DNA of 64,000 bases, taken from Podarcis filfolensis. Lineage: Eukaryota. The stretch lies in assembly GCA_964270895.1 (NCBI GenBank), contig OZ185435.1; one strand, written 5' to 3'. Below are positions 6,703-60,076 of this stretch, piece by piece. A program made the translations under genes and the position numbers. Position 1 is the stretch's first letter. The number at the start of each line of letters is the position of its first letter. The notes beneath the pieces were generated by a model that did not search any database, had not been told where the DNA came from, and worked only from the letters and a program-made list of their open reading frames with translations.

Positions 6703-6737
6703 TGCATTTCCCCTTATTTAGCCACTAGATGTCTCTG
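6703..6737 (+). promoter_or_regulatory. Possible CTCF motif with upstream module
   Basis: TAGCCACTAGATGTCTCTG (two mismatches to the core) preceded at roughly the expected spacing by TGCATTTCC. Confidence 0.4.
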
Positions 6738-22478: not shown

Positions 22479-22550
22479 GTCTAAAGGAACCTCTTACCTA
22501 GCTGGAAACATGACAGGAACCTAGTACCAACCTCAGATTTTGGGGGGTGG

Positions 22551-22750
22551 NNNNNNNNNNNNNNNNNNNNNNNNNNNNNNNNNNNNNNNNNNNNNNNNNN
22601 NNNNNNNNNNNNNNNNNNNNNNNNNNNNNNNNNNNNNNNNNNNNNNNNNNNNNNNNNNNNNNNNNNNNNNNNNNNNNNNNNNNNNNNNNNNNNNNNNNNN
22701 NNNNNNNNNNNNNNNNNNNNNNNNNNNNNNNNNNNNNNNNNNNNNNNNNN
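22551..22750. other. Assembly gap (200 N)
   Basis: Run of exactly 200 N, a fixed-size scaffolding gap. Confidence 1.
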
Positions 22751-38853: not shown

Positions 38854-39773
38854 ATTTTAACCTTCTTGAATTACTCCCCCAGGCTCTGCCCCATTCCTGT
38901 AGACTGGAGAGCTGTAAAAGAGCAGTCCTCCAGCCTAGAATCTCAGTCACCTTGTTCCTTGCCTGCACTAGTGAGAGGTCACTAGTGAGCATGAGGCCAC
39001 TGATATAAAGGGAGGTAGTGACTGAAGAGAATCTGACTTAAAAGGGATTCAGTCTGGAGGCATCTGGCTCACAGGGTTCCTGGCATCAGGGCCCAGGTCT
39101 GGATTCAACACCTTGTTCTGCTGGTCTTCCCAATACAGCTGAGTCAGAGCCCTGGCTGCAGCTCAGTGTTGAGTCATGACAACAGGTTCTTTCAGGACAA
39201 CACTTTAAAGGCAGAACTCTTTTATTCTGCCTGGGATTCTCTACACTTTCTCGGATAAGATTGGACTGAGTGACAGATTGATCCAATCCAGTCCAGCCCA
39301 TGGGCCTAGATCAATCAGGATCTTCTCAGTTGTTTTGACAGGGTTATGAAACACACTCCACAGGGATGTCTGCTTGGTCCCATCTCTGCCCAAGCAGAGG
39401 GCATAAAAAACATATCATTTTCAACAGGCTGTGAGTTGACTGATCTGATTTACATTTTAAAAAGAGAGTACTAAGGATGCTTGCTGAATTTTATTCTGTT
39501 TGTGTGGGTGTTTTGCACTGTGGTGTTTGAGCTTTAAGCAATCTTTAGTCTATTTTGGTAGTGTTTGATGTAATGTGTGCTGTTATTCCCCTGTTAGGAA
39601 CTCTGAGTATTTTAAAACGGAAAAGTGAGATAAAAAGTGCCCTGGTATGTAATAAATAGCCATTACATACCAGCTCTCCTGTGTGTCTGCCCAGGAAAGA
39701 AAACGCTTTGCTGAATAAACCACTCGGTGACCTAAGAGTGTCCTGGGATTAAGTGATATGGGTCAGCCAGGAC

Positions 39774-39794
39774 GTCAGCACCATGGACAGGGGC
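39774..39794 (+). promoter_or_regulatory. RE1/NRSE (REST-binding) motif, distal
   Basis: GTCAGCACCATGGACAGGGGC versus consensus TTCAGCACCACGGACAGCGCC; both half-sites intact with the canonical 2-bp spacer. Confidence 0.8.
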
Positions 39795-40061
39795 TGGTTT
39801 GTTTTACAGCTATTGGAAACCCAGCCTTTCGGTGGCACGAGGCTGGCACTTGTGCTTCTAGTAAAGGGAGGTTAGGGTGAGTGGCACTCTCAGTTGGTGT
39901 CTTGGGGAGCACATCCTCTTGGAGCTGAGGATGCTGAGTAGCTGAGTGCAGTAAATCTTGTAAGCTGGAGAACTTGTAGCAGTGGATAACTGAATTCACA
40001 CAATAGAGAAGCAGAGTTTGGAGGCTATGAAGCTATTCTGCCATGAAGCCAGGGCTGAAAC

Positions 40062-40220
40062 ATAGGAATCATCCTATTGGTTCATCTAGTTCAGTATTGT
40101 TTATGCTCACTGGCAATGGCTTTCCAGGGTCTTTCCCATCCCTACTTGGAGTTGCCAGGAATTGAACCTGTGATATTCTTCATGCAAACCAGATGGTTTA
40201 CCACTGAACTATGGCCCTTC
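40062..40220 (-). mobile_element. tRNA-headed SINE, same family as 10750
   Basis: ATTGGTTCATCTAGTTCAGTATTG...GGAATTGAACCTGTG...ACCACTGAACTATGGCCC. Confidence 0.65.
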
Positions 40221-43200
40221 CTTTGTCCGTACTCTGCCCTTCTCCTTGCAAATGAAAGCTTTACACCAGAAAAGAAACCTTTGGACTTAGATAATTAGCT
40301 TTACACCAGAAAAAACCCTGTACTTAGATAAGGAGCCCCTGGCTCCTTGGGGTGTGTGAAAGAGCTGAAGCACACAGTCTGTGCTTAGATAATTCTAAGT
40401 ACAGAATTACCTGTACTTAGACCACCAGCCTAAATTACACCATTTTATTTTGTGTTAGTGGTATCTTAAATTCTGAACCAGAAGGCAGATTCCATGTTTT
40501 ATATTTTGTTACTATGTGTGTGCTCTAGTAATAACAGCTGCCCTCTCCCCACCTGTTATGTATGCCAACCCAAGCTTATGCCATGTGCTAGTCTTTAAGG
40601 TGCAGAAGAGTCACTGTTGTTTAGAGAGAAGAAACTATCTAAGGACTCAGACATGGATACGGAGCTCTGCTCCATGTTGTCCACAAACCCAGAGCAGCTT
40701 CCAGCATCCTGCTATCTAGCCCAGCCCCTGGCTCCTTGGGGTGTGTGAAAGAGCTGAAGCACACAGTCTGTTTGCATTATAAGCACCCAGGAGATACCCA
40801 GACATTCCAGTGACAGGGGCCAAGGAGATACCCAATTAAAGAGTGATGCCTGGAAATGATACCATGGGGATGTTACTATGGCTACCAGGAATGCTTTAGT
40901 TAGAAAATCCCGTTCCTTGGTCTCTGCCTGAATGCAGAGTGCAGCCGTGCACAGATCTGTTCAAGGTTTTAGTTATTCAATGAGGGCTCACTCTCGTTCT
41001 CTGTCTCTCTCACACACATATATGCACACACCTTCCTCAGAAAGGGTGCCACAACTGCAGCAGAGGCGCTGTTCTGTTATCCATTAGTCTTTGACCCAGC
41101 CCAGCCTCCAAGTGTGGTGCACGTTTCAGTCACTAAACGACAGCTCGGAATAGACTGCAGCAAAATCTAACCAATCAGGAAGCAGGCACTCCCTGGGCCA
41201 TGTGGAGCATGCCTTATTCACAATTTTTAGAAAGGAATCCCTAATGAGGTTCCCGCCCCACTACAATTAGCTGCTGCAGACTGGAGGAGGAGGAGGAGGG
41301 ATTCCCCCCTCCCATTTATTTCTCCCTAGCATAAGAAAATGCAGAATAAATGATTTAATATTAGGGACAGGGGTGGAAGAATGGGATGGAATCCGACACA
41401 TGCACACCCAATCCCCACATCTGTTTGTTAGATGGTTTGTCTGTTGGGCACACCTGCCTGTCACATCTGGTGGCAAGCTCAGCCAACTGGTTTGATAAGC
41501 GATGATGCCGACTTAATCAGAATGACTGGGGCAGAGGAGAAAAAGCTGTCTCCAGTTGCTTCTTGATTGCTCTTGTACTTCATGCTATTATCTAACAAGG
41601 AGTTATAATGCTTGAGCCTTTCTAAGGAGGATTTGGAATTTGTTAGTTTTTTAAAAAGATATAACTTGCATTGAAACCTGAACATTGTAACCTTTACATA
41701 ATCTGCAGGCTTCATCATCATTTAAAACAGGTTTCTATGATCTAACATAAAAAGCACATCTCATTTTTGGTGAAACATAGACCCCTGGACAATGAGAGCG
41801 ATTAATCACTGGAGAAGGATAACCTGGAGCAAGATAAATTGAGGCCATTCTGCATAAGGAGAAAAAACTAGTTCCTGCTTTATTCACACCCTAGAAAGGG
41901 AGAAGGAAAAAGATTAACTATTTGACACAATCAAAACTGATGATATTAGCTGTGCAAAGGATTAGACTGTGAAAAATATGAAAGATCGATGGATTCTGAG
42001 GCTCCTTCTCTGTTATTCTCCTCTGACTTGACACTCTTTACTTTCTCCTGTCAGTTTGAAGTTCCCCTCCAGAGGGCCTCCTTCAAAGCTAAGTGAAGCA
42101 TTTCCATGAGGTTTGGCTAAAGCTCATATTGATTCTCTGCACAAAGGAAGAGAAGCAAACTGTATCATTTCAGCCATGAGCCCTGTAATTTTAGGGGTTG
42201 AGGGAGGGAAGCCACGAAGAATGAAAGAGCATACACTAGATGTACTGGGTGAATGATGCTATTGTGTTCTGAAACGAGACAAAGGATTTTTAAACACATT
42301 ATTTGGCTTACCAATTATTTGGCTTACCAATGCCAGAATGTCTGTGTAATCAAAACCTGTTTTATCAAGTATCACTGTTAAGGATGCAGTTGTCACTGTT
42401 TGTATTTGACTGCATTTCATTTCCCACTGACCTAACATTTTACAATCCAACACAAATACTTAGGCTAATTGTGGTCCATGAAAGCTTATGCCGTAGTAAA
42501 TGTGTTAGTCTTCGTTTCTTCGATGGCTTTGCTGCAGAAGACTAACATGGCTATGCCTCACTCCTACCAGGGTCAAGGGACCTCTAAATGTGATTGTATG
42601 TGCAGACTGGGGTCAGTTTTCAAAGAGCCCAACCCCATGCTTTCTTATGTATCAGCAGCAGAACATGGGATCAGAATAAACTGCTGGCACAAAGGGGGCC
42701 ATTGGCCTATTTAGGAGAAGCTTCTACACAAGGCATGGAGGCCAAATCCAGCCCGCAAGACTTCTTAAATGTCCCCCAGCATTGCCTCTGATCCCAAAGA
42801 TCCTTCCTCTAGAGTCTAGCATAGTGTCCATCTACTTAATCCTCTTCTGGGCCACATGGGTATGATTCTTTAAGCCTGCACTCATTCAGTTGTAACAGCA
42901 AAAGAGCCTTTTTCAGATTTATACGTCTTTGTTGTTTCTACCATAGGTAAATGGGCTCGAGCCTCTGGGTGCATAATAAGTGGAAAATTCTACCCATACT
43001 GCTGATGGGGAAAGGAAGCTGATGGTGAAAGGAGCTCTTTGCCTTTATCTTGGTTTGCATGGAAACAAACTCAGTGGACAGATGAAAAGTTCCTGGCACT
43101 TTAGCCCTGGCTTGGTTCTGAATTTCACCCTCCTTAAAAATGAGTCACCAAACCACATTTTCCATGGCACAAAAACCATGATCCTTTTTCAGGATGAAGA

Positions 43201-45542
43201 GTGCCTGGTAGGGGAGAATGTCCATCATCTGCCCCCTTGAAGCGTCCTGTTGAGGTCCACCACTGGGGTCTTTTGCTCCTAACATCAAGTGTATCTTTAT
43301 GCTGCACCAGGATCTGAAGTAATGGAGGTTTGCTTCACATTGAACAGCTTGTGGGGTGGGGGGAGAACTGATGATTTGTCTGATTGTGGGTGTTGTTTAT
43401 AGCTGCTGCACACTGCCAGTAAATGAAATCTGGGGGAATGTAGGAAGTCCTACTACTAATGCAGAAGAAAAAGAAGGCTGTTTTATTTATTTAAAAATCA
43501 CCAATCACTACAAGTGTAGTGTAAATGCTTAGGCATAAGTATGCAAATATTCGGGTGACTTCCTGCCATTTCAAATTCCCACACAATTCAAGGGTGTGGG
43601 GACTGCTCAGTCATTACACTTACTGCCCAAACAGATGTGATGGAGATCCAATCATGGAACTCCCAATCATTATTTTTATTTTAAAATGTAAAGCACCAGA
43701 GTTGTCTGTGGAGGGGATACATTGATTGAAAATTTATTGCATTGTAACTGTATTGTAACTTTTGAATAAATGTTGTTGTTGGTTTCTTTAAAATGTAAAA
43801 TACATGCAGCATTTGCAAAGTATGGGAACCAGTTTTGACTGGAACAGCAATGCAGGGGGAGGAGGTGTTTTAAGCATCCTTTTGATTGAAATCACTCCAC
43901 TCAGCTGCTATTAGCTCCACTGGTTGAAAAAAAGATAGGCACTCCCTTTCCTTTAGTGGGGCAGTGTGTGTGTGCACACACGCACAACTTCAATGGGGGA
44001 AATAGTGCAGGGGAAGGGGTTAAACACTCCTTCCCGCAACCAGGGCTCTGATTAAAAACCTACTCCAAGATCTACTGTAGAGTTTAAAAGCTGGGGGGGG
44101 GGGAGCATCCATCAGATCTCCTGCATTGGATCTGCCTTGATCCTTATCAGCAGCAGAAGCCCAACAAAGCTTACCTTGTAAATTCATCAGACCCTAGCAA
44201 TGATATGAATCTGTCTGATCCTGCCTTAGGGCACTGGGTGGATGATTGGCAGCCTTATAATTCCATGTCTGTGGGTATAGAAATATGAATATAAGTATTT
44301 TGTGTGCATTTATGATTCAGAATAAATGGTTCAGAGTCTTTAAAGAATGGCAATCTGCATTATCAAAAGTATGGTGTCTGTTGTCAAAACTGGCAGCATC
44401 TCCATCTTCCTTACAGTGTGTATTTCTCCTTTTTTTGCATTTGGCTTCATCCCTATTAGAGAACTGGTTCCTACAAATTGCAGGCGAGGATGTAAGGGAT
44501 TTGCTGTTTTTGCTGTACCACTTCAGAATGCAGACAGAAGGCTGGTCAACACTTCTGCTTGTGCCATGCCTAGAAACACGGGTCCAAGCAGTTTTTCTCC
44601 TTGCTCTGCTTCTTTCCAAGGAAGAACCCACTCACTAGTGATAAATCAGAACAAATGGCAATCTGGGGAAAGCTGCCATTGCGATTTGCTGTGATTGAGC
44701 ACTACAGAGCAGTCGGGAGCAGTGGGACAAAAGGAAGTGTGGATAAGCCCAGAAGCTCATATGACTGAAAGCTCTTTGTAGCGTGTGAGAAAATGACATA
44801 GTCCCTGCACATAGAAAATAAGCATAGTGAAGGCTAGTGTAGAACTCTTCACCCTGACACTCTGGCTTTCTATATGCAGGGTGTTCACCACCTGACTGCA
44901 CTGGGCCTTCATTTGCTAAGGTTGGGCAGCAATGGCACAAATTGCCCTCACATCTGAAGCTTTTTCATACCAAAATTGGTGGATTTGAAATGTCACTGCA
45001 CTGGGAAATCCTCTGCTAGGAACCGTTGTTACCCTCCCCACCCCTGAAAAAGGCAGTCTCCATTCACTTCTTTCTTTGAGCATTGCCTAGAACCAGCTAA
45101 ACACATAAACACACGCACACTAATGCCAGATTAACCACTAATGCAAAGCCATGGCCTGAACAGCTGGGGAGAGTGCAGGTCTTGACAAAGAGCCTTGAGC
45201 CTTCCATTTTCAGGGGCAGGGGTGGGGGAAACTTCATTAACAGGAGAGGAAATGATCACTGTGCAGCAAAGCATTCAAACCTACTGCTCATTCATTTGTA
45301 AACATCCTGAGCCTGTTCTGCCTGGACGGCTCACTTGCTGATTGATTGGGCTCCTGTTGCTGCTGTCTCATGTAAATGTGGAGGCTTCCACACACACTAA
45401 GCACCAATTTGTCCTAGGCTTGACCTCTTGCTTACTGTCAGTGGCACGTGAGGAAAAGAATATCCTACTTAGGGTTATTAAGGTGAAAGGCAGAGAGCGC
45501 GCGAATTATTTTCTTTAAAGACTACCGGATTGATTATGGCAT

Positions 45543-45876
45543 CAGGGGCGGAGGAAGGGGGTGCGGTGGGGGTGGTCTGCCCCAGGTGTCTTCGCTGAGA
45601 GGGGTGACATTTGGCGCACCACCCGCCTGCAATTCCCAAGCCTACCCTGAGCTGTCGGGGGAAGGGGGGAGCTGCACCGCTTTGCTGGCAGTATTCCCCC
45701 TTCCCCTGACAGCTGGGGGAGGCTTAGGAGTTGCAGGTGGGTGGTGCGCCGAATGTCTGCCATCGGCAGCTTGCTCTGCCCCCGGCTGCAGGGCACGCAT
45801 GCCACTCCAGGCACCCAAGCGGCTATCCCACACCAGGGAGGGCACCTGGGCAGTGCGGGCATATGCTCTGCCGCTG
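45543..45876. mobile_element. GC-rich hAT-type MITE with internal long hairpin
   Basis: TIR CAGGGGCGGAGG / GCTCTGCCGCTG; perfect TSD TATGGCAT at 45535-45542 and 45877-45884. Confidence 0.8.
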
Positions 45877-45888
45877 TATGGCATAAGG

Positions 45889-46135
45889 CAGGGGTCAGCA
45901 AACTTTTTCAGTGGGGGGGGGCGGTCCACTGTCCCTCAGACCTTGTGGGGGGGCCGGACTATATTTTTTTGGGGGAGAATGAACGAATTCCTATGCCCCA
46001 CAAATAACCCAGAGATGCATTTTAAATAAAAGGACACATTCTATTCGTGTAAAAACACACTGGTTCCCAGACTGTCCGCGGGCCAGATTTAGAAGGCGAT
46101 TGGGCCGGATCCGGCCCCTGGTTTGCCTACCCATG
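45889..46135 (-). mobile_element. hAT (Charlie-like) MITE, same family as 38619
   Basis: CAGGGGTCAGCAAAC...GTTTGCCTACCCATG; TSD GCATAAGG / GCATAAGC. Confidence 0.85.
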
Positions 46136-46214
46136 GCATAAGCCTTCATGGACTAGAGCCCAACTCACCAGATGCATAACATGTTAACAATGGATAGCAA
46201 ACAGTCAGAAACAC

Positions 46215-46430
46215 TTTGTTTATTACATTTAGATCCCACCTTTCCTTTAAGTTGTTCAAGACAACGTATTTGGTTCCTGCTTCTCATTTTTCCTCTCACA
46301 ACCACCCTGTGGGACAGGTTAGACTGAGAGGTACTGACTGGTCCAAGGCCACCCAAAGAGCTTTATGCTGGGGAGGGGACAATTTCAGGCTCGCTCTAGA
46401 TAGCGCTATCCAACATTGTAACCACTGCAC
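46215..46430 (-). mobile_element. Squam3/MIR-like SINE, older
   Basis: CCTCTCACAACCACCCTGTGGGACAGGTTAGACTGAGAG...GACTGGTCCAAGGCCACCC reverse-complement core. Confidence 0.65.
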
Positions 46431-46456
46431 AATGGTTCTATACATACATACAGACA

Positions 46457-46489
<33 letters not shown>

Positions 46490-46674
46490 CAGTGGTCAAA
46501 TTATTTGGGTATGTGTGTCACAAATGAGGCTCAACTCCTTAACTTTGTGATGAGCCCCTCATCTAATGTTTTAGAAGGATACAGGGGACATGATTTGACT
46601 AAGGTGATGAGGTTTAGGTTTCATTAAGCCCTCTATATTTTTGCCATAATTTGATACATTCTCATTCCCCCCCC

Positions 46675-46708
<34 letters not shown>

Positions 46709-46945
46709 GAAAAAAATGCATACAGGGTAGAAAAGTCATGAAACACTCTAATTCAGATAATTAATAAGGAAACAGGATAAATTCATCAGGGGGCCAGTTT
46801 CCTACCAGGGGAGTTGATAGCAAAAGTTTGTGTGCACTTCACATTTCACAGCACAATCTTATACATGTTTACTTGGAAGTAAATCAAACTGTGTTTTGTG
46901 ACTCTTATTCTCAGGTTAGTAGGCATAGGACTGCAGACTTAATTT

Positions 46946-47604
46946 CTTCCTTTTTAAAAATAATTTTTATTAAAGATTTTCTTGGTTTTCAAGCCAACCC
47001 CTAGTATATGTGTGGTTTTTGTGTCAGTGTCAACTGGGTAGGTTCTCTTTCTATTTGCTTATTACATTTCCTTAGTAGTGAGAGGGATTGGGGACAGGGT
47101 GTGGTTGGTTGTCTGTAGTTGGCTGCAGTGAGGTTTGTTTGCATTTGTGAGGCGGGGAGGGATTGTTGTGTCAAGTAAGCCGTATTGATTTGTATGTTTT
47201 TGGTGGATTCCTGTTGTTCTCTTGTTGGGCTGTGTATGTAATAAAGGGGAGCCATACTGGGGTGAAGGCATCCTCTTCTATTTGTCCCCATTGTCAGTTT
47301 CAGACTGTTAGCTTTTCTAGTAAGGCTGTTTCCCATGTGATTCAATACCAGTGGTGCATATTGACTTCTGGCAGGTCTCTCCAGTGTTTGGCTATGAGGC
47401 TTCTGGCTGCTGAGAGTAGGTGGGTTATAAGCTCTTTATAATGTGAGTGGGCATTATTATCTTGGAAAATGTTCAGTAGGGCCAGTTCTGGGGTGAATTC
47501 TAATACCTGATTAGTTATTTTGCATATCTCTTGTAGGACTGCTGTCCAGAAGGGTTGGATTTTGGGGCATCCCCACCACATGTGGAGGTATGTGCCTGTG
47601 GAGG
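46946..47604 (-). mobile_element. 5'-truncated L1 LINE with 14-bp TSD
   Basis: Minus frame MWWGCPKIQPFWTAVLQEI...LLSAARSLIAKHW (L1 ORF2 C-terminal Cys-rich region), then 3'UTR and AATAAA; TSD TGCAGACTTAATTT at 46932-46945 and 47605-47618. Confidence 0.85.
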
Positions 47605-48501
47605 TGCAGACTTAATTTATCTTGCCTCAGCATGATAGACATCAAGTGGTCTCTAACAATGCAATTTATACATCATGCACATGGTACAAAGCTCAGGAAT
47701 GTTTCACTGCTGAGTGCTTGTGAATACAGACAGAAATCTGAGCTGTGCATAAATGACTGCATAATACGAACTAAGATGTTTCTCCATATAGCATTATTAA
47801 CTTTGTCATGAAGCCCAACTGAATTCAATGGAGCTGCTTTCTCAACAAATGTGTCTAGGGTTGTGCTGTTTGTCTGTTTGCTGGTTATTCCCACTTCCCT
47901 GGGGAAGGTAGTTATGTGTGGAGATCTCCAACAGAGAATCTCCAGCCTCTTCAGCAAACCATCTTTTAGAGCCCTAAAGCAGATGTGGTGTGGTGAACCT
48001 GTGGTTGTTTGCACTCTAGCTCCCATCAGCCTCCAGCAAACATGGTCAATGGTCAGAGATGATGGGAACTGTAGGGCAGCAATATTGGGGGGGGGCAAGG
48101 CTCCCTATTCCTAACATAAATGACTGAGCCCTGTGTGCCAAGAAGACCATATTCTCTGCATGCAGCCCTCCCTGTCCACTGAGGTTGGATGGAGATCATG
48201 CCCTTTCATCAGATCAAGTCAATAAATGAGGGGAGGGATTCAGGGACTTCTCAGCAGCGGTTCAGCCAACATTGTGGAACTTCCTTCCTAGCTAGAACCA
48301 TCTGGTTACTTCCCTCTCTGTCCACCAGCCAGAGAAGACTTGCCTGTTTCAGCATCATTTTTGCATCTGTCTTGGGCTGAGATGGAAGTTGCACAGAAAC
48401 CACACACACACACACACACACCCCTATCTTTTTATGTTTGTTGTGTTTTTGTTCTTTTACTTGCTTTATGCATAGCTTCAGGAAAGCACAATGACAAACT
48501 G

Positions 48502-48651
48502 NNNNNNNNNNNNNNNNNNNNNNNNNNNNNNNNNNNNNNNNNNNNNNNNNNNNNNNNNNNNNNNNNNNNNNNNNNNNNNNNNNNNNNNNNNNNNNNNNNN
48601 NNNNNNNNNNNNNNNNNNNNNNNNNNNNNNNNNNNNNNNNNNNNNNNNNNN
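48502..48651. other. Assembly gap (150 N)
   Basis: Run of 150 N; no flanking duplication seen. Confidence 1.
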
Positions 48652-49826
48652 CTTTGCAAATAATTACCCTGACCTTGAACAGTATGGACTTAGGAAGCCA
48701 AACTGACTGTGTTTGGAATCCAAGTATTGCCCCATCTTTTACACTGACAGATCTGGATGTTATCTCAAATGACTCAGTGGGTTTTTTCTGTAATTGGATG
48801 TTTTGATATCCGCTTCTTTTTAATTTATTTATGAAAGGATTGTGAGAATGGAATTGCTACAGTTGCTTACTTTGCAAAAAGCATAAACAAAAGGAAGGGG
48901 AGCAGGGAATCTGAGCATTGTTTTCATTAGAACCAAACCCAACCCCCATACCAGGCTGGAAACCAAGAGCTGCAATAAACTACTAGAGATCTACACTCTT
49001 CTCCTGCACTGAGCTAAAAATACTTGCAAACAGGGCTTAATTTGTGGCCGGGAATGACTGGGGCTCAGCATGAGTTTTCAGTGCCATGGTTCAATCCAGG
49101 AACAGATGGCAAAACTAGATTAAAATTTCCCTGAGCAGGTGCAGAGTGCATTTCCCAATCAACAGTTACAGAGAGACCCCACATATGGTTGGAGTTTCCA
49201 GACAGATATAACTCTCAGCGTATCTCCCCCCCCCCAGAAACCAAACATAGTACTTCAAACAACCTACCAATGAATATATCCCACCCCCCACCCCCGCTCC
49301 CCAAAGGTAGGGAATTCCACAATATGACTAGTAGCTTTAGGTGTTGCATCTAATAACTAGAAAATATATCCTCCCCCACCCCCCACAACCTAAATCAGCC
49401 CTCTGTCCCAGACACATTAACTGATTGGCAGTCCAAAAAATAAAGCACAGGTTGGAAATAGGGATTGTTGTTTTCTATCCACATCTACACCCCCAAGTTT
49501 TCCCTGCAACTACCTTTCTTCAAGGTCCAGCATGAAGCAGGACTCCCTGAGGGCTGAGTAATAGTTGACGACACCTGAGCAGATGGAGAGGGGGGATTTA
49601 ACCCTTTCTTCTCCTGCTGTGGTCTTGAAGAAAAACCCTTTCCATAAAGCAAACATTTGCTTTGGGGAAAATCCCCACTGGTACAACTAGAAAACTCTGG
49701 GAACCAGATGGGTCAATGGTAACTACACATAACAGTCGGTATCTACCGTAAATCAAACCAAACTATATGGATCCTGGTGCCGTTGCAGTAGCTGATAGAT
49801 TACCGACATCAATCTATGGACTTACA

Positions 49827-49952
49827 CAATGCTACTTTTCTAGAAAAAGAGGTTCCGGAACTCACTATGAACACCGCCCCCATTCTCTTAGAATGGCAAT
49901 GGCGCCCACCTGAGAGGTGCTGGAGCTGAGTTTTGGCTGAAACAAAGTCCTG
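49827..49952. mobile_element. Short hAT-type MITE
   Basis: Perfect TSD GACTTACA at 49819-49826 and 49953-49960; internal GTTCCGGAACTCAC motif. Confidence 0.75.
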
Positions 49953-50379
49953 GACTTACATTGATTTAGACAAAGAGCTTAACACAATTTCCAAAATATT
50001 GTATTATTTTTGGTGTTTGTTAATAAAGATAAATTGTTGTCTTTATTAAACGTCCTGAGACTGCATATTGGAAACCCATACTAATTTATTGATTAAGAGC
50101 AAGACTCCTAAAAGTACTCAATAGCTGGCATCCTTGAACTAAAAAACCATCCCCCTTCTTGTTCTCCTTTAATAGCTAATCTCTGTATATCCATCTGCAT
50201 ACTGCTCTATCTGAAAGGGGCTTAGTAAGCCTGGAGGTGTGGAGGTATAACACAGAGGTTTGTCCTTGGACTCTGAATCCTGCTTGTTGGTAGAAAAGCA
50301 CTAGTTTAGAGACAGATATTTAGAAAACAGGTTGGTGATGCAGCTGACGCCAAGCAAGAAGGCCCTTAGGCCACATTCC

Positions 50380-50960
50380 TATACTGAAAGCCCACCAGTT
50401 AGGGGTCTATAGGATTTGGTGAAAGCCTCACTGGTCCAAGGAACATGTCAATGTCCCAAACATCGTTGGGCAGCAGGTGTGTCTAGGCTGCCATTTTCTC
50501 TACAGCCTCTTAGGCTCACCTGACATGATGGGCACATCTCTGGGGCAACCCCTGTCCTCAACTGTCCTGGCATGCCCAGAACCATAGTGGCTGGATCTCC
50601 ATCCTCTGCTGCTCACCACCAGGCATGCACATACCTGGTTGGCATGCCATGGGCTCCCCAACCCACCCAATGACCTTGGCGCAGCAAGCTAACATCCAGC
50701 TGCTACATCCTTACTCTAAGGCCAGTCCAATAATGCTGTGTCATGGGGCCAGAAGCATTTGGGGTGGGATGACAGTCACTGCAGACCATCAGGATCTTGG
50801 CCTTGGTGTGGTGCCGGCCTCCCATCAGCAACCAGAGTGACCCCAGAAGCATCCTGGCCCAACACTGCAGACATGATGGCCAACCTCCAACTCAGGGTCA
50901 TGCTGTAGAGGATCATGTGGACCACACACCTCTCTCACACATTCCACAATAAGGAGATAC
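50380..50960. mobile_element. Possible decayed retroelement internal fragment
   Basis: Coding-like GC composition with no intact frame; family not identified. Confidence 0.25.
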
Positions 50961-51395
50961 CAGAAATGCAACTTCCACAACCATACATGTTTTCTGGTAG
51001 TATTGTTCAGTGAGCTTCACCAAGCCCAGGGCAGCCAGAGTGAGTGTGGCACTGTGTGGGACCTCCTAGCTCCCGCTACTGTGAATGTTCTCCAGTGGCC
51101 TCATGAAGTATCTTCTTCCTGTCCGTACACACACCACTTCCTGCAGCTGTGGCAATGGATGTCCAGTTGGCTTTTCTTCCCCTGCCCTGGTGCGTCTTCT
51201 CTCAGGAAGGTCATTGCAAGCAGTTTGCCACTGGTTTTGTGGACAGTGCCCTAGAATTATTCCCTTGGTACCTGTGGCTGCTGCCATGTTTTGCTTCCTG
51301 GGCATATGGCAATGTAATACATGTCTTTGTTGGCCCTCCAGAGCCTGTGGGCCCTGACAGTCAGATCCTGATGCTGGGCCACCCCCACCCTGATA

Positions 51396-51629
51396 AAGGT
51401 AAAGGTAAATGGACCCCTGACCATTAGGTCCAGTCGTGACCGACTCTGGGGTTGCGGCGCTCATCTCGCTTTATTGGCCGAGGGATCCGGCATACAGCTT
51501 CCGGGTCATGTGGCCAGCATGACTAAGCCGCTTCTGGCGAACCAGAGCACCTCACGGAAACGCCGTTTACATTCCCGGCAGAGCGGTACATATTTATCTA
51601 CTTGCACTTTGACGTGCTTTTGAACTGCT
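51396..51629 (-). mobile_element. 5'-truncated Sauria SINE with 15-bp TSD
   Basis: Reverse-complement (ACCTTT)n tail and body; ACCCCCACCCTGATA duplicated at 51381-51395 and 51630-51644. Confidence 0.88.
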
Positions 51630-52951
51630 ACCCCCACCCTGATATATTGGCCAGTAAAATCCAGGACAACAGAAGAGGGTATAGAAAGCGGGCCCTGGTT
51701 GTTGGGCATTGCCAATATTTCCTGAGATGCAGCAGGGGTCTCTGCTGCCATTACAGCATTTTTCTCTTTCCCACATGCATGCCTTCCCAATCTCTCCTCC
51801 TGGGCTGAGCGCACATTGGATACAGCTGCTTTTCTCCCAGTGGAGCAGAGGTGTGCCCCCCACCCAGGCAAAATGTGAGTAAAGAGTTCCTCTTTCAATC
51901 ACTATTCAGGTGCAAGTTGGATAACCAGGCGCATGAGAAATACTCAGCAAATTTCTTTTTTTAAAAAATTATGAAAATCAGCCCCATGGACTAGGCTTCT
52001 TAGATAAAGTAGACCTTCTTGACCGCAGCAGAGACCAAGTTGCCAGGCCCTTATTTGGAGATAACGCCGATACCTTTCATAAATATCTGAGGCAACTGCT
52101 GTGACTCCTGCCCAATTCTTTCACCACCCTTTCTGCAATTCTATTATTCTTTCCCAACCTGCTGTAAGCAGTAGAATCCTCCTTCAACCTAGAGTAGGTA
52201 AATTGAATAAATAATAATTCCTGCATTGCAGGGAGTTGGACTAGATGATCCTTGTGGTGCCCTCCAGTTCTACATTATACTATAAAAAGCAATAAAAGTT
52301 TTCCTGCAGTTTCCTGAATTCCACTATTTAAGATTCTCCATGCCTTAAAGTCCAGGGTCAGCAGTGGATGCATCGGTGTCTGAGCATTTGCTTATTTACA
52401 CATTCATGGGCTATGAAGTAATAGCTGGGCAGCAGCAGGAAGTGCAATGCTCAAGGTAGAACTGGTCCAGGTCCAAGATGCTTCAACCGAAGCTCGGCTG
52501 CCACTACCCAATGCAGTCAACAGCTCAGAACAACAAACCTCCCTCCCTGCACCCCATTCCCAGCCTATTCCTTCAGTTCCTGAGTTGCTTTTCCTATTCA
52601 ATTTATCTGATGCACAGGGAAGTCTAACTATGGTAGTTTCAGATATTTTCTTGCCTCTCTGCCATGAATGCTTAAGTTGAACTACTCCAAAACAATGGAC
52701 CCCACCTTGATTTGCTTGGCTCTGAAGGCTCCAAAGGGATGGTGGAACTTCATCAGAGTTGTATGATACTATGAATTACACAAGTTCGCATCACACAATT
52801 TCTCCCACACTGCTATTGACTGTGCCAAAAGTCCTCCTTGTCCTGCACTGTGGAACATCAGTGACCCACTATTTTCCAGTTCACAGCAAACATTTTCAGG
52901 CAGCACCACAGGTTGCTCCTCACTCTAAAGTAAGTTTTCTAGTCCCTAAAC

Positions 52952-53087
52952 TGGGGTTTTCCAAACTTGGGTCTCCAGCTGTTGTTGGACTACAACTCCC
53001 ATCATCCCTAGCAAGGAAGACCAGTGGTCAGGAATGATGGGAATTGTAGTCCAAAAACAGCTGAATACCCAAGTCTGGAAAAGCTTG
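52952..53087. mobile_element. 136-bp palindromic MITE, variant 1
   Basis: CCAAACTTGGGTCTCCAGCTG...GGACTACAACTCCCATCATCCCT...CAGCTGAATACCCAAGTCTGG; flanked by CCCTAAAC on both sides. Confidence 0.8.
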
Positions 53088-53095
53088 CCCTAAAC

Positions 53096-53231
53096 CAGGC
53101 ATCCCCAACCTGTGGCCCTCCAGATGTTTTGGCCTACAACTCTCGGGATCCCTAGCTAACAGAACCAGTGGTCAGGGGTGATGGGAATTGTAGTCCAAAA
53201 CATCTGGAGGGCCGAAGGTTGGGGATGCCTG
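53096..53231. mobile_element. 136-bp palindromic MITE, variant 2
   Basis: TIR CAGGCATCCCCAACC / GGTTGGGGATGCCTG; perfect TSD CCCTAAAC at 53088-53095 and 53232-53239. Confidence 0.9.
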
Positions 53232-56200
53232 CCCTAAACCATCTGCACCCACAATTTTTCTCATAAACACTCTACAATGCAGGCCACACATCTGGGTACT
53301 ATGTTGCTGGAGACCCTATGCAAGTCAGAATAAACAATAGTGGACCAGTGGCCTGACTTGGTAAAAGGTCTTTCATATATCCATAGTAATAACCCTATTA
53401 CGTAGAGTGCAAAGACTTCTGCCTATCCCCAAGAGTTTTGCCATTCTAGATAGCAACTAATTTAAATGATTGAAAAAAGGTCTCTCAGACCTTCTCTCCA
53501 CCCTACTGAGGTAAGCAGTAATACTTGGGAGTCTAGCATGGCTAAACCCTCCTGGGGGGCAGTCTCTGGGCCATAAGTACTATATGAATTGTGGCTCTCG
53601 TTTTCTTCCCCGTTGTGGTATTTACTGTTATAGACACCAGCCACTGGAAAGCAAGCATATAAATTGGGGGGAAATAGAATGAACGTTACAAATCTGTCAA
53701 AACTTTGCATAGTGCTGAGTTGTATGTGCTTTGGGGGCAGAGCCTATGAGTAGTCCACACCCTATTCTAAGAGATCCCATCCAGCGGGACAGGGTCTGCC
53801 CAAGATGGAAGCAAACATGGTTTGTGTGGATCTCTTCAACTGAAATCTTCTCTGACATACATGCATAATGAGCTATAGCAAGCAGATAATATACATGGAG
53901 CAACATATAAAGTTTCAGAGGTGGATTCAGTTCTCAGAACACAGCTTTCATTGGAAAGATAGTTATAAACATCATGAACTGTAAGCACTGACTTTTCTGA
54001 AGGAAGAGGACATTTGCTTACAAAATTAGAATCAGAGATCATGAGTAAGAATGTGTATAATTATCTCAGTATCATGAGTAACATGTCAGTATTGAGGGTG
54101 CCCCAAATAGTCCTTGCTATTTTAAGAATGTGATGAAATTTTAAATTTTCTCCAGCTACATTATTAAAAAATCTATTTTTTTTAAATGGCACCTGCCATT
54201 TGGTTGGTTGGTTGGTTGGTTGGCTGGGGGGGAGGAATAGAAATACTTGCCCATTTACCCCCACCCCACATTGGACCCCAATTAAACCAAACACATGATC
54301 TGAGTGGAGTCTTATGTATGCCTACATATGTAGCACCTAGCTTCAAAGTACAGGATTGCAGCCTGCAGCCTTAAACTGTTAGATGCCTATCTGTCTACAT
54401 AAAGTCTGTTGACTTAAGGAGCGTCCCTATCAGGATGCATACTTTAGACAACAACAACAGCAAAGCAAAAGACACCAGATGCCGTTTGATAAGGACCCCC
54501 TGTTTTTGCTTACACAGGAGGTAATTGTCTATGAAAACATAAATAATAAAACACAAAACCAGGCTGCCCCCTTTCAGAACTGCTATGCTTATTTGCAAAT
54601 GTATCCAAATTTAAACCAATTAAGATGGATAATCAACTAATATTTAGTTGGCTGTCCTCAGCTATAAGCTTTTATGTGCTTCTCCACTGATTTAAAGCTG
54701 TCTGGGGCATTTGAGGCTGAAGGGGAATCCCCCCCCCCCAAATCACACTTGTCAAAAGGTCAAGAGATAATGTAAGCAGATGGAAGGCTATTAAATCACT
54801 TTTCTCCATGCTCTCAGAAGCAATGTTTTTAAATTGTCAAGACATAATATTCAAATTATAGAAACATAGGTGTGCTTCAGACAAAACAAGTCTCCACTGA
54901 AATTCTAGATCAAATCATGAAACCAGTCCTTAGCAGTTCTAATGCAGCCTTCCCCAGCCTGGCGCCCTCCAGATGTTTTTGACTACAACTCTCATCAGCC
55001 CCTGCCAGCAAAGCTAATGCTGAAAGGCGTTATTGTCAAAAACATCTGGAGGGCACCAGGCTGGGGAAGGCTGCACTAGTACATGCTAGCTCTCATAGTC
55101 AGAATAATAGAAAACCATGTATGAGTAGCATAAAGGCCTGTAAAATTGTGGAAGCTACAGGTGCAGTTAGTGGTGGAGTCAATTTGCTAATGCACAAGGT
55201 CTGAACTCTGGCCCTCTGAGCATTATGCTGGACCTGGCTCCTTTGTCAAGACCTGGCTCCTGTCGTTTTTTAAAAAAGAAGGAATAATGAAGCAGGCATA
55301 CCTTACAATTCAATCTGTAGTGGCAAGTACTATTGAAACACAGACTGACAGAGCCCATTCTAACATACAGAAAATTGGAGTCTATTATGAAGTCCATTAT
55401 TATCATAGTAAGTGTTAATTCTGCATAATCACGAAAACCATCCTTGATCATGCTGGCTCAGGCTGAGATTCTGCAACAGTTGGAAGGCACCAGATTGGTT
55501 ACCTCTCTCATAGACCAGGTGTGGTGGGGAACCTTCGACACTCCAGATGAACTACAACTCCCATCAGCCAGTTTTTTTAATTAATTTTTTATCTGCCCAC
55601 TTAACAAAAAAGGAAAAAGAAAAAATAAAGTAAGATAAATAAATAAAAAGTAACCAAAAAAGCCGCCACCATTTCACAATGTGAATTCAATAATGCCAAT
55701 GGCCAGGGTTGATGGGAGTTGTGGTTCAGCAACACATGGTGGGCAACAAGTTCCCCACAGCTGCTGCAGACAGTCAAAAAATGCTTTTGGCACATGACTG
55801 CCATAATATATCCAATAAATGTTTGAATTGTTCTGTGCCAGAAAAGCAAAACTCAGGTGTCAGATATTGTATCACTCAGTAGAAAACCACCTTCTAAATC
55901 TGAATTCATATTCCATAGTTATGAGGGTCTAGTTGACACAACAAAATAAAGGAATGAAGCTTTAACATGGACTACTCATAGCTCTCCTGTCAGAGAAGGT
56001 GGTAATACTGTAGCCCTCCATTGTGAATTCCTCACACACACAGTCCAATATCATAGAAAATTGATTGGCTCAGCTTATCTAGTTGCTTGTTGCAATTCTG
56101 GAATAAAAATCCATTTAATCTGTTCTATTTCAAATTCAAAATCATTATCTCAATTCCTAGCCCATTTCACTAGTAAGGTTAAGGCACAGGCCAAATTACA

Positions 56201-56486
56201 CAAGGGAGTTGTATGGCAGTTAATACTTAAAGCTGCCACTGACTTGATCATTGCAATAAGAATCTCCAGTTTTATTTAGTCACATGTCCAAACTACCTTC
56301 TAACAAAAAAATTCCCTCTTCAAGTTTCTGTTTATCAACATGTTTCGGACAACTGCAAGGGTGTCTTAATAACTGAAGTGGCATTGTTAGTTCTTCTAAA
56401 CACCCACAACCCAGTTCTTTAAATAACCCAAAAAAAATCCAGGGTGGGTGAGGGGCAGATTGAGGCAACAGAAATAGCCCACAGAA

Positions 56487-56507
56487 TTCAGTACCTTGGA
56501 CAGCTCA
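56487..56507 (+). promoter_or_regulatory. RE1/NRSE motif ~2.2 kb 3' of CDK5R2 stop
   Basis: TTCAGTACCTTGGACAGCTCA; one core C>T mismatch in the left half-site. Confidence 0.65.
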
Positions 56508-57629
56508 ATTTAAAAAATCCATTATGAAATTAAAAATAAAATCTGTATTAAGATGGAGAAGCTACAAACAGCATCATCACGGCTGTATAAATGCAAGCAG
56601 GGAAGAAAATGGTTTTAAAAAATACTAAATAGTGGTGGTGAGGAGATGGAAGGAACAAGACTGCATCCAAAACCATACATGTCTCCTATCCTAATGTAAT
56701 TAAGGGAATGCAAAGCACAGCATAGGTTGTGGCCCATCAGCATTCTTCAGAGGACTGAGCATTAGGACTGTCAGTCTGCAAACAGACTTCCTGTCTGGAA
56801 GAAGCACACAATAAGCCAACAATGTGCTCTTAATATATGCAGCTTTTTTTGTTAGCTGCACTTTGATACATGACAGCCAGGCTGTCTTGTTTGGTCAGCA
56901 GGGGACATTCAGGATTGCTTTTAAGAGCTCTCTCTCTCAAAAAAAAAAAAAATGTTAGGCATCCAATCAATTCCTTCTCTGATCTTGTCTGTTTAGAAGA
57001 TATCAGCCATAGATTATTTATTTTTAAATTCTGCATACTTAAGCAAACAAGACTAATGGCAAGCAATTTCCTTCTTGGTCTTTCTGTACATTTGCAGACA
57101 TTTTAATTGGAGACTATGCGTGTTTCATTTTAAAATTAGTTCTTGACTAATATTTGCCCAGCCAGATCTCAAGAAAACAGTGTGTGTCCTCATCTAAAAG
57201 GGCTCCGGAATAAGATGAACTGCAGTTCGATATCAATTCCCATTAGCAAGTCTGGGATCTCCTGCCAACACAGCCATTTAGGAAATCATCAGCCAAGGGC
57301 TAATGCACCATTGATGCTGACCGTAAACCCCCCCCAACACAAATTGCCATCCTTTTCTTCCCTCCTCCCTTCTTTGCCAGTCCCAATGCATTCTGCATTC
57401 CTCTTCCCATACATCTGCGGTTCTGAATGATCAAAGGATTCCAAAGCTCCGCTTTGACTCATTATTTTTATCTCTTTTAAATATACAATATAAAACAATA
57501 TGTTATTGTACATTTGAGCAACATTGGCACAGACATCCTGTAAGTCAAACATTGTTCTGTTACATTCAAACACCATGAGACAGCTTGTTTTCAGCTTCGA
57601 GAATGTGCAAATGTATGTCGGTCTAAGAG

Positions 57630-57650
57630 GCTAGCACCCTGGACAGCTCC
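57630..57650 (+). promoter_or_regulatory. RE1/NRSE motif ~1 kb 3' of CDK5R2 stop
   Basis: GCTAGCACCCTGGACAGCTCC; AGCACC-NN-GGACAG core perfect, first three positions mismatch. Confidence 0.65.
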
Positions 57651-58619
57651 TAGCCTCTGCTTCAGATGGGAGGGGACTGGGTGGGGGAAAGGAGGAGGCA
57701 GGGAGAGAATAGGTCAAATAAGGGCCATTGAAGGATAGCAGCACAGCTTCCCCAGCACTTCCTTTCAGTGTTGGAAGCAGATACACACACCTCACTCTCC
57801 CCCATCCCCATCCCCACCACTGCGATGAAGGAGGGAAAGAAATGATGAAAGGCATTTGACTTTGCAGAGGTGGACAGCAGTAGTATATAACCATCATCTA
57901 CTTTGTAGAACAACCACTATGGCAGAGCCATCAAACAGCAGGAAAGGGAAAAAACATGCAGGAATTGCTTCACTGGAAAAGTAAAAGTAAAATACAAGAC
58001 GGAATGCTCTGGGCTGTACTGTGATTCACAGTAGCAGCAAAGAGATCCAAAACCATGGATACACTGGTGGGGCTTCCACAGGTGAGGTCACAGCAGCTGC
58101 TTTTTCCTGCAAAAGGCAGAACTTTGTCAATACGTAATGCCTAAGGTTGACCCATTAGTCTAGGAATTCTCCCCATTTGGAAGGAGGAGGAGGGGAAGAA
58201 CAGCCCCTCCCTCCCAGGATGCACCCACAGGGCCTGAAGTGCACCCAGCTGGGACAAGGTAATAGAGAAGGGGCAAGTTCTGCTCCTAGCCAGAAGGCAA
58301 CAGTACATCATGGGTCAGACACCATCCCCATCCCCCAATATTCAGGTGCTGCAGTTGTGGGAAGGGGCTGATGTAATTTTGGGTGTGGCCCACAAGATGG
58401 AGGGTGGAAAGACTGGACTCCAGCAAGTCCTCACCCACCCACCCACCCCCAAAAAGCCTGACTGGCTCATGGAGAGCAGCACTCCACCCTGTACGATGGG
58501 GTGGGGAAAGGATATGTCCCTAGCAACTCCCCAATCCCAAAACTCCCCAGAGTTTTCCTGCCCCTGTGAAATCCTGGCTGAGAAGAGCTTGGGAGGGGAG
58601 AAGAGAGAGAGAACGAGGA

Positions 58620-60020
58620 GCAGTGCGTCCGGAAAGGTGGAGGGAGGAGATGGCGGGGGTCGGGTGGGGGGTGGTCGGGGCTCTCCTAGCGGTCCAGGCT
58701 TATAGTCCAGTGTTTGTTGGAGCCGGAGTCCTTTGTCGGCGCACCCTCGCTCTCGTTCTTGAGGTCCTGGAAGACCTGCGTGAAGAAGTGCGGGTCGGCG
58801 TTGATCTGCAGCATCTTGGCGCTCAGGCCCTGGATGATCGCGAGGCAGCGGTCCCAAAAGCGCTCCTTGTCGCCCTCCACCAGAAAGGGCTTGAGCGGGT
58901 AGGAGATCTCGTTGCCCATGTAGGAGTAGGCCAGGTAGAGGCAGGTGAGAAAGGAGGCCTGCAGCTCGGCCTGGCTGCCCACCTGATCGCCCTGCAGCGC
59001 CTCGCGGCACAGCAGGTACACGAAGACCAGGTTGGCCGGCGTGATGAAGCCCTGGTCCTGCCAGCCCTGCAGCAGCAGCGAGCGGTCCACGCTGCGGAAC
59101 CAGCCGATGACCTCGCCGGGACTCAGCTCCTTGAGGCGGTAGCAGCGGCGGCACACGAAGTCCCCCAGGCAGCGGAGCAGCTCGCCCGTCGAAGCCTGCA
59201 CGATCACCCGCCGCGGGGAGCCGGGGGCGGCGGAGGAGGCGGCGGCGCGGTTGCCGGGCAGCGGCGGGGGTGGTGGCGGCGGTGGCTGCTTGCCGCCCTC
59301 CTGGGCGGAGGCGGGCACGGTGGGCACCGGTACGGCCAAGGGCCCCTGCTTGGCGCCGTCGGGCTGGGACTTGCGCGCGTTTTCGCGGTTGCGCTGCTGC
59401 ACCAAGGGGTCGGGCGCGCCCGCGGAGCCCGGCTTGGGCGTCACCTTCTTGGCGTTCTTCTTCTTTTTGGCCGAGGCGGCCACCAGGCGCTTCCAGGTGA
59501 GCGCCGAGATCAGCACGCCCGGCCGCTTCAGGCGGCTCTCGCCCTTGCCGTGCGCCCGGCCCGGAGCCGCCTTCTCGGCCAGCACGCCGCCGCCGCCGCC
59601 CTTCCCCGGCGCGCTGGGCGACAGCGACAGCACCGTCCCCATCTTGGCTGCTGCTGCTGCTGCGAGCGAGCGAGCGAGCGGCTGCTTGGCGCCTCTGCTG
59701 CGCCGCCCGAGCGCTTACAGCTGCTGCCCAGGCGCGCCCGGCGCACCGGCCATGGGCTGGGGCGGGACGCAGCAGCTGCGCCGGCGCCCTGAGTCGGAGC
59801 TTGCGGAGAAACCTCGAGGAGCCGCAGTGAAGCGCGCCAGGACGGACGAGGACTCGGGTCAACCGGCGCTCAGCAGCTCCCCTCTCCGCACTGGCTGCCG
59901 CACTAGCCCCGCCGCGCCCCGTCCGGCCTCTCCCCGAGCAGCCAATCCCGTGCCGCGGCTCCCCCGCCCCTCAGCCAATCGCCTCGAGGCATCGACCCCC
60001 AGGTGCCTTCCTTTCCCGCT
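58620..60020. promoter_or_regulatory. CpG island spanning CDK5R2 CDS, 5'UTR and promoter
   Basis: Dense CpG across the gene; two CCAAT boxes (AGCCAATC at ~59940 and ~59973) and GC box CCCCGCCCC at ~59961 upstream of the ATG. Confidence 0.85.
58686..59642 (-). CDS. CDK5R2: Cyclin-dependent kinase 5 activator 2 (p39), single coding exon, 318 aa
   Basis: [10 protein letters not shown]-terminus (Gly2 myristoylation motif), basic KKKKNAKK patch, CDK5-activator domain ([15 protein letters not shown]...[17 protein letters not shown]...[11 protein letters not shown]), p39-type C-terminus KHWTISLDR; Kozak GCCAAGATGG; convergent with FEV as in human synteny. Confidence 0.96.
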
Positions 60021-60023
60021 GAG

Positions 60024-60026
<3 letters not shown>

Positions 60027-60076
<50 letters not shown>
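60027..60076. repeat. (GA)25 microsatellite upstream of CDK5R2
   Basis: Pure GA run. Confidence 0.95.

Follow-up and report, generated by a model that had tools for sequence, protein, structure and literature searches.

The interval between FEV and CDK5R2 raises the question of whether three RE1/NRSE motifs (sites 1, 2 and 3), found in the 64-kb stretch of lizard DNA analysed here (the window), act as one downstream silencer of both genes, as originally predicted, or whether they differ in age and in the gene that they concern. The gene geometry is clear. The single-exon CDK5R2 (p39) coding sequence lies at 58686–59642 on the minus strand, stop codon included, and specifies a protein of 318 amino acids with Pfam domain PF03261; it is 99% identical to the cyclin-dependent kinase 5 activator 2 of Podarcis muralis. 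The FEV 3′ end that faces the interval is set by the last FEV exon (25583–26086, plus strand), which runs from the ETS domain (PF00178) to the stop codon, is 97–99% identical to squamate FEV and aligns where the Ets gene terminates in both the duck and the alligator locus. With the FEV stop at 26086 on the plus strand and the CDK5R2 stop at 58686 on the minus strand, the predicted convergent arrangement was confirmed. A second, identical copy of the last FEV exon (19401–19904, plus strand) is located within a 6.18-kb perfect duplication that adjoins an N gap at 22551–22750, and both the copy and the duplication are probably assembly artefacts. FEV exon 2 was placed by tblastn at 10057–10134 (plus strand; residues 17–43 of Sceloporus FEV), and the FEV promoter is therefore expected near 8–10 kb of the window; GC content rises at 8001–10000. 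A further assembly gap (48502–48651) separates sites 1 and 2 and overlaps no motif or reading frame. Its flanks are collinear with leopard gecko locus L002 in the same order and orientation (window 45359–45429 and 49977–50049 matching gecko 20939–20868 and 18043–17970, respectively), so that the join is plausible; the distance of 16.7 kb from site 1 to site 2 is nevertheless to be read as an estimate only.

A search of the whole window for the core AGYACC-NN-GGACAG (AGYACCNNGGACAG) returned matches at 39777, 56490 and 57633, each on the plus strand, as compared to a mean of 0.03 expected from 100 dinucleotide-preserving shuffles, none of which (0/100) held three or more. The full 21-bp elements begin at 39774 (site 1, GTCAGCACCATGGACAGGGGC), 56487 (site 2, TTCAGTACCTTGGACAGCTCA) and 57630 (site 3, GCTAGCACCCTGGACAGCTCC); all three match the core exactly at 12 of 12 positions, and two of the three lie within three mismatches of the full 21-mer consensus. 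Agreement with RE1 extends to positions outside the pattern on which the original prediction was based, as TC or TTC precedes AGCACC in sites 1 and 2, and site 3 carries C at position 18 and CC at positions 20–21. Scored with a 21-column RE1 matrix, which is an approximation rebuilt from the published logo and not the JASPAR MA0138 counts, sites 1, 2 and 3 reached 25.9, 25.7 and 24.6, respectively (maximum 32.7), the next-ranking match in the 64 kb being 11.4, and no match of 24 or more was obtained with 200 column-shuffled matrices or in 200 first-order Markov windows. The claim of three same-strand motifs between the FEV and CDK5R2 3′ ends was thus borne out, and the shuffles and matrix controls led us to reject a chance origin for the three-site set; chance could account for site 1 taken alone. 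Alignment of the three sites with 75–80 bp of flank per side revealed no similarity beyond the motif, which indicates that they are not copies of one repeat, and a repeat origin was rejected on this ground and because site 1 is single-copy in related genomes while sites 2 and 3 are syntenic orthologs. As for their shared orientation, it is correct that all three sites lie on the plus strand, but this would occur by chance in one case in four and carries no weight as evidence for the three sites; sites 2 and 3 have the same orientation because the pair is orthologous across species.

Sites 2 and 3 form a pair behind CDK5R2, both antisense to the gene: site 3 (57630–57650, plus strand), the proximal member, lies 1036 bp beyond the CDK5R2 stop, and site 2 (56487–56507, plus strand), the distal member, 2179 bp beyond it. 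High-scoring RE1s antisense to CDK5R2 were found at corresponding distances in 10 other species, with elephant as the non-human mammal of the comparison. Orthologs of site 3 were assigned in eight species, at +954 to +1242 past the CDK5R2 stop in Podarcis, Eublepharis, Tiliqua, Liasis, Anolis, alligator (+1101) and elephant (+993), and at +420 in duck, the one exception. Site 2 has orthologs in five species at +1961 to +2324, namely Podarcis, Eublepharis, Tiliqua, Lepidochelys and elephant (+1961), or at +2081 to +2324 when elephant is excluded; the single RE1 of frog, at +1724 (approximately +1.7 kb), was counted with neither site type. The spacing between the two sites is 1143 bp here, 1096–1140 bp in other lizards and 968 bp in elephant. 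The 21-mer of site 2 is kept in gecko, skink and turtle within flanks that have diverged, and in duck and alligator the motif alone is kept at site 3, again within diverged flanks. In each of the two ortholog sets, variation affects 7 of the 9 degenerate positions but just 1 of the 12 core positions (Fisher p = 0.002 for each set). High motif quality, an excess over chance and orthologous conservation with RE1-shaped substitutions are features of the sequences themselves. At motif position 3, where C is preferred, site 3 carries a T that it shares with python and anole, the latter also bearing the core change GGATAG; the affinity of site 3 may be reduced on account of these substitutions.

The two members of the pair have been lost reciprocally: sea turtle lacks the proximal site, whereas python, anole, duck and alligator lack the distal one. 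Nevertheless, at least one RE1 is present behind CDK5R2 in all tetrapods sampled and, among amniotes, in the same orientation and at about the same distance, so the two sites look partly redundant. Comparison across species upheld the original prediction for sites 2 and 3, one or both of which are conserved in other lizards, python, turtle, duck, alligator and elephant; for site 1, the complete duck and alligator intervals contained no counterpart. Together, the matrix scores, the excess over chance and the conservation of sites 2 and 3 provide good support for the predicted RE1 identity of the motifs.

Conservation of site 3 could also have been imposed on the transcript. A conserved block downstream of CDK5R2 (56640–58685, minus strand), defined by contiguous squamate alignment, holds site 3 and ends approximately 130 bp before site 2; its blastn alignments to gecko, skink, python and anole span 1.8–3.4 kb at 70–76% identity. 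This block is probably the CDK5R2 3′ UTR, with a transcript end predicted from sequence, and a scan for poly(A) signals identified AATAAA on the minus strand at 57022–57017. Since squamates conserve all of the 2 kb that follow the CDK5R2 stop, and site 3 no more so than its neighbours, conservation within the block cannot separate constraint on an RE1 from constraint on a 3′ UTR, and what was kept at site 3 might be a target for a microRNA or an RNA-binding protein, read on the mRNA strand, instead of a DNA element for REST. Such an explanation is, however, highly improbable, as a full 21-bp RE1 is still present in duck, alligator and elephant, where the surroundings of site 3 can no longer be aligned, the variation of site 3 tracks RE1 degeneracy, and site 2, which lies outside the conserved block, exhibits the same pattern of a motif island. 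Furthermore, the corresponding mouse positions, as judged by distance, are REST ChIP peaks.

These peaks come from REST ChIP-seq of mouse E13.5 pancreas, in which two peaks were reported at +2387 and +3302 from the Cdk5r2 TSS (Rovira 2021, PMC8415321). The two peaks coincide with entries of the Whyte ESC set, and the distal peak overlaps a UCSC ESC/NSC track as well (PMC8415321). Their distances fit site 3 and site 2, in agreement with the original expectation of REST occupancy at the orthologous interval, the peaks having been paired with the lizard site types by distance. That CDK5R2 is a REST target, as had also been stated, is supported by three sources: Cdk5r2 is among the REST-bound genes with changed expression in Rest knockout pancreas, where it is described as up-regulated (PMC8415321); it was chosen from an RE-1 database as a REST target in a RIP-REST study of beta cells (PMC3447792); and in PC12 cells with high REST levels it displays a log2 fold change of -10.2 (PMC4639699 supplement). 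Published mouse and rat data are thus the source for the occupancy of Cdk5r2 by REST and for its REST-dependent expression, and we infer that lizard REST binds sites 2 and 3 and represses lizard CDK5R2. The conserved pair, the mouse peaks and the derepression of Cdk5r2 together identify sites 2 and 3 as an established type of element at an established REST target. Our preferred reading, to which we assign a probability of roughly 0.8, is that an ancient RE1/NRSE silencer pair of CDK5R2 is represented in the lizard by its orthologs, sites 2 and 3, and that site 1 is a separate, younger RE1-like motif.

Under the silencer-pair reading the two elements would act from approximately 1 and 2 kb downstream of the stop codon in the small intronless CDK5R2 gene, a position that is roughly 2–3.5 kb from its promoter. 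Each 21-bp element would be bound by the zinc fingers of REST, which would in turn recruit the Sin3/HDAC and CoREST/LSD1/G9a complexes; these complexes would be expected to maintain a deacetylated, silent state of the compact CDK5R2 unit in progenitors and non-neuronal cells, and the fall of REST in neurons and neuroendocrine cells would then release CDK5R2.

Site 1 (GTCAGCACCATGGACAGGGGC; 39774–39794, plus strand) stands apart from this pair, the nearer gene end being the FEV stop, at a distance of 13.7 kb, and the CDK5R2 stop being 18.9 kb away. It is located in single-copy DNA, with a depth of approximately 12 as compared to thousands for a SINE-like repeat 290 bp away, and it is intact in four close relatives, in two of which the sole change, 39791 G>C, is found. 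Among these relatives, which are approximately 1.5% diverged, the 21-mer has one variable position, in a degenerate column, against 17 in approximately 750 bp of single-copy flanks; at such low divergence the conservation of site 1 has no power. No counterpart was found in the complete FEV–CDK5R2 intervals of duck (5.6 kb) and alligator (9.5 kb), nor in the 10 kb that follow CDK5R2 in the gecko, skink, python, anole and turtle sequences; the 10-kb CDK5R2 flanks of five squamates end at window equivalents of approximately 45–49 kb, short of site 1. In Gekko kuhli, no RE1 was found in the 10 kb past FEV, where homology ends by window 29.3 kb. A hidden gene near site 1 was considered and rejected, as neither notable ORFs nor cross-species conserved blocks were detected around 39–41 kb. 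A spurious 74-aa ORF overlaps site 1.

Site 1 is best described as a separate and younger RE1-like motif in unique intergenic DNA, the sequence of which should permit REST binding. It is conceivable, although we consider it less probable than not, that site 1 is neutral, having arisen in one lineage by chance or recent mutation and without regulatory function, the pair alone being of importance. Several observations are consistent with this: at 0.03 per 64 kb, a whole genome should contain hundreds of chance core matches; no counterparts of site 1 were found beyond its close relatives (in duck, alligator or the covered squamate flanks); its surroundings include neither coding sequence nor a conserved block; and the variation of the 21-mer relative to its flanks in the four relatives gives no sign of extra constraint. 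Against this, the probability of one additional chance core match within this window is only approximately 0.03, the flank positions not used in the search (TC before AGCACC) conform to RE1 as well, the sole substitution is consensus-ward, and site 1 neighbours two neuronal/neuroendocrine genes. In mammals, canonical RE1s of such quality are mostly occupied.

The possible influence of these sites on FEV was weighed separately. Had the three RE1s formed one downstream silencer domain, repressive chromatin across the interval would silence both CDK5R2 and FEV outside neuronal and serotonergic cells. All three strong motifs do lie between the 3′ ends of the two genes, and GREAT assigns both mouse Cdk5r2 peaks to Fev also (+28098 and +27183; PMC8415321), though on proximity only. 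In a high-REST PC12 clone Fev (log2 fold change -10.0) and Cdk5r2 (-10.2) both belong to the most strongly repressed genes (PMC4639699), a clone difference that may be indirect, and gene-regulatory-network modelling identifies Rest as one repressor of the genes for which Fev+ endocrine progenitors are enriched (PMC10230264). FEV, strongly down in that PC12 clone, is moreover contained in a list of REST/Polycomb candidate targets (PMC4639699), and the original statement that FEV is not usually framed as RE1-controlled was consequently only partly true, FEV already having been a candidate target.

A single three-site cluster was, however, not sustained by the analysis, and we regard a shared silencer domain as unlikely. 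Site 1 is approximately 17 kb from the pair, no counterpart of it was found in the complete intervals of duck and alligator or in the covered flanks of squamates and turtle, and the mouse pancreas data contain no third REST peak between the Cdk5r2 pair and Fev (PMC8415321). As assembled, roughly 30 kb separate the FEV promoter (approximately 8–10 kb in the window) from site 1, and roughly 47 kb separate it from the pair. Loss of Rest leads to derepression preferentially at promoter-proximal sites (Rovira 2021, PMC8415321), and the complete list of REST-bound genes with altered expression in the knockout pancreas does not include Fev (PMC8415321). Control of FEV by these REST sites is on balance unlikely. 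A narrower proposal, in which site 1 is a squamate- or lacertid-specific gain that extends the REST repressive domain toward FEV and silences it from the 3′ side, appears quite unlikely too; if true, this gain would represent lineage-specific rewiring of a terminal-selector gene, the serotonergic/enteroendocrine FEV. Whether REST also acts on FEV is the point of wider interest at this locus, and current mouse data give no support for such an action. The ancient CDK5R2 pair, for its part, adds no new mechanism: its value lies in the recognition of genuine REST silencers, two of them old and stable, from sequence alone, and in a reciprocal loss that offers a small, clean case of redundancy among paired repressor sites.

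The lizard sites have the same 21-bp bipartite motif as the canonical RE1/NRSE elements of SCN2A and STMN2/SCG10 (Johnson et al. 2006 PSSM, PMC1557810), in which a left half CAGCACC and a right half GGACAG are separated by a 2-nt spacer, and which function in either orientation inside or downstream of their target genes; the SCN2A and STMN2/SCG10 elements have been validated by EMSA, ChIP or reporter assays, whereas the lizard sites are characterized by sequence and evolution. Transposon-borne RE1 copies, as well as RE1-like hERV sequences that are not bound, have also been described (Johnson et al. 2006, PMC1557810), and such transposition offers an established way for RE1s confined to one lineage, such as site 1, to originate. 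Unlike transposon-borne RE1s, site 1 is single-copy, and the three lizard sites have no common flanks. The elephant locus, with canonical RE1s at +993 and +1961, has the antisense orientation seen in the lizard. The closest known system is mouse Cdk5r2, which is REST-bound and REST-responsive, the lizard sites being recognised by sequence and site 3 carrying T at position 3; as in the lizard, the REST-bound sites of mouse Cdk5r2 are two in number, lie approximately 0.9–1.1 kb apart and are situated approximately 1 and 2 kb beyond the stop codon of this intronless gene.

At this locus of a lacertid lizard two genes converge, as originally predicted. The + strand carries FEV (exon 2 at 10057-10134, end of the ETS exon at 26086), whose ETS exon is 97-99% identical to squamate FEV, and the - strand carries CDK5R2 (p39) as a single-exon open reading frame at 58686-59642, the product of which shares 99% identity with that of Podarcis muralis. 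A long GA/CT dinucleotide repeat at approximately 59990-60060, which appears as RE or SL runs when open reading frames are translated, sits directly 5′ of the CDK5R2 coding sequence, probably in the 5′ UTR or promoter. The RE1/NRSE core AGYACC-NN-GGACAG was found at 39777, 56490 and 57633 in the 64-kb window, all three matches being on the + strand, as compared to a mean of 0.03 matches in dinucleotide-preserving shuffles, in agreement with the claim that their number exceeds chance. The positions first put forward for these motifs are the first bases of full 21-bp elements on the + strand, namely site 1 at 39774 (GTCAGCACCATGGACAGGGGC), site 2 at 56487 (TTCAGTACCTTGGACAGCTCA) and site 3 at 57630 (GCTAGCACCCTGGACAGCTCC), which score 25.9, 25.7 and 24.6, respectively, on an approximate 21-column matrix (maximum 32.7) drawn from the published RE1 logo and not from JASPAR counts. 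With this matrix the next best match in the whole 64 kb scores 11.4, and a score of at least 24 was never reached in 200 column-shuffled matrices and 200 first-order Markov windows. Similarity among the three sites is confined to the motif. We conclude that the RE1 motifs at sites 1 to 3 are real.

Site 3 (proximal) and site 2 (distal) lie 1036 and 2179 bp past the CDK5R2 stop, and their conservation was assessed across ten further species, using each CDK5R2 locus together with 10 kb on either side; these were the squamates Podarcis muralis, Eublepharis, Tiliqua, Liasis and Anolis sagrei together with Lepidochelys, Anas, Alligator, Loxodonta and Ranitomeya. The comparison revealed orthologs of both sites in squamates and other tetrapods. 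The proximal type is present at +954 to +1242 past the stop in all five squamates, alligator and elephant, and at +420 in duck; the distal type is present at +1961 to +2324 in Podarcis, gecko, skink, sea turtle and elephant, and the frog Ranitomeya has one RE1, of unassigned type, at +1724. All of these RE1s run antisense to CDK5R2, the orientation also seen in the window. Species keeping both RE1s space them 968-1143 bp apart. In the loci scanned, the distal RE1 is absent from python, anole, duck and alligator and the proximal one from the olive ridley sea turtle, yet none of the ten species, nor the window, lacks both, and this reciprocal loss suggests that the two are redundant. In squamates site 3 falls within a stretch of unbroken alignment that extends from the CDK5R2 coding sequence to approximately 56640, is probably 3′ UTR and contains AATAAA on the - strand at 57022-57017. 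The site 3 21-mer is retained in duck and alligator although its surroundings cannot be aligned, elephant likewise has a full 21-mer, at +993, and in gecko, skink and turtle site 2 stands out as an island of identity between flanks that have diverged. Variation among the orthologs of either site affects 1 of the 12 core positions and 7 of the 9 degenerate ones (Fisher p = 0.002 each), as would be expected of a REST site and not of a generic conserved block. Elephant also carries a third, weaker RE1-like motif (ACCAGCACCAGGGACAGCTGG; 14936-14956 (+) of its locus, score 21.7), 3.8 kb past the CDK5R2 stop, in opposite orientation to the pair; it is not obviously related to site 1 of the lizard. 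A separate non-coding block of approximately 90-130 bp at 52351-52479, some 6.3 kb past the CDK5R2 stop and without an RE1, shows 84% identity in gecko, 83% in skink, 76% in anole and 68% in python; it is a possible squamate enhancer between FEV and CDK5R2.

Site 1 lies downstream of both genes, at 18.9 kb from the CDK5R2 stop and 13.7 kb from that of FEV. An N gap at 48502-48651, which overlaps no motif or reading frame, separates it from site 2; the blocks on both sides are collinear with the leopard gecko locus, so that the assembly join seems plausible, with distances across the gap being estimates. In four related organisms, contigs span 39300-40300 at single-copy depth with approximately 98.5% identity, too little divergence to show constraint, and the only change within the 21-mer, 39791 G>C in two of the four, affects degenerate position 18 and shifts the site towards consensus. 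Near site 1, which it does not include, a SINE-like high-copy repeat with tRNA-like sequence occupies 40076-40225, 290 bp away, where contig depth in the four related genomes reaches 2000-5600 versus approximately 12 in the flanks. The intervals that are complete, those of duck (5.6 kb) and alligator (9.5 kb), hold no second strong RE1; no third RE1 was found in the 10 kb past CDK5R2 of five squamates and the turtle, and no RE1 in the 10 kb past FEV of Gekko kuhli, where homology ends at window position 29.3 kb. In the mouse REST data the stretch from the Cdk5r2 pair to Fev is free of peaks (PMC8415321). On these grounds site 1 is best taken as a candidate RE1 of lineage-restricted occurrence.

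In mouse E13.5 pancreas, REST ChIP-seq gave two peaks at +2387 and +3302 from the Cdk5r2 TSS (Rovira et al. 2021, PMC8415321), both of which overlap the Whyte ESC set, the distal peak overlapping a UCSC ESC/NSC track as well (PMC8415321). The original prediction, a downstream silencer of three sites acting on both genes, is not supported. Joint control of FEV by these sites is improbable. In its favour, GREAT assigns the mouse peak pair to Fev, by proximity, and Fev is down as strongly as Cdk5r2 in high-REST PC12 cells and is listed by the same study as a candidate target of REST and Polycomb. Against it, the FEV promoter is far off in the assembly as it stands, some 30 kb from site 1 and 47 kb from the pair. 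Derepression that depends on REST is enriched at sites close to promoters (PMC8415321), and the uncut list of REST-bound genes with a change in the Rest knockout does not include Fev (PMC8415321). A third Fev-assigned mouse peak lies upstream (Fev -6308/Cryba2 +1416; PMC8415321); no lizard RE1 scoring at least 12 occurs upstream of or within FEV in window positions 1-19000, the equivalent position perhaps falling outside the window. The FEV region itself contains a 6.18-kb tandem duplication of 99-100% identity (16569-22550 and 22751-28730), whose second copy starts at the first base past the intervening N gap (22551-22750) and which places the ETS exon at both 19401-19904 and 25583-26086. This looks to be an assembly artefact, a false duplication at the gap, and not two FEV 3′ ends; if it is, the promoter distances shrink by approximately 6 kb.

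CDK5R2 itself as a REST target is well borne out: besides the mouse peaks, Cdk5r2 is named as a REST-bound gene up-regulated in the Rest knockout pancreas (PMC8415321), was taken as a REST target in beta cells from an RE-1 database (PMC3447792), and shows a strong decrease in a PC12 clone with high REST (PMC4639699 supplement). As the coding sequence measures 1.1 kb and the 5′ UTR is short, the two mouse peaks fall approximately 1.0 and 1.9 kb past the stop, positions which match, by distance alone, those of the RE1s in elephant and of sites 3 and 2 in the lizard. Sites 2 and 3 represent, in the lizard, a REST-CDK5R2 module that is already known and deeply conserved.
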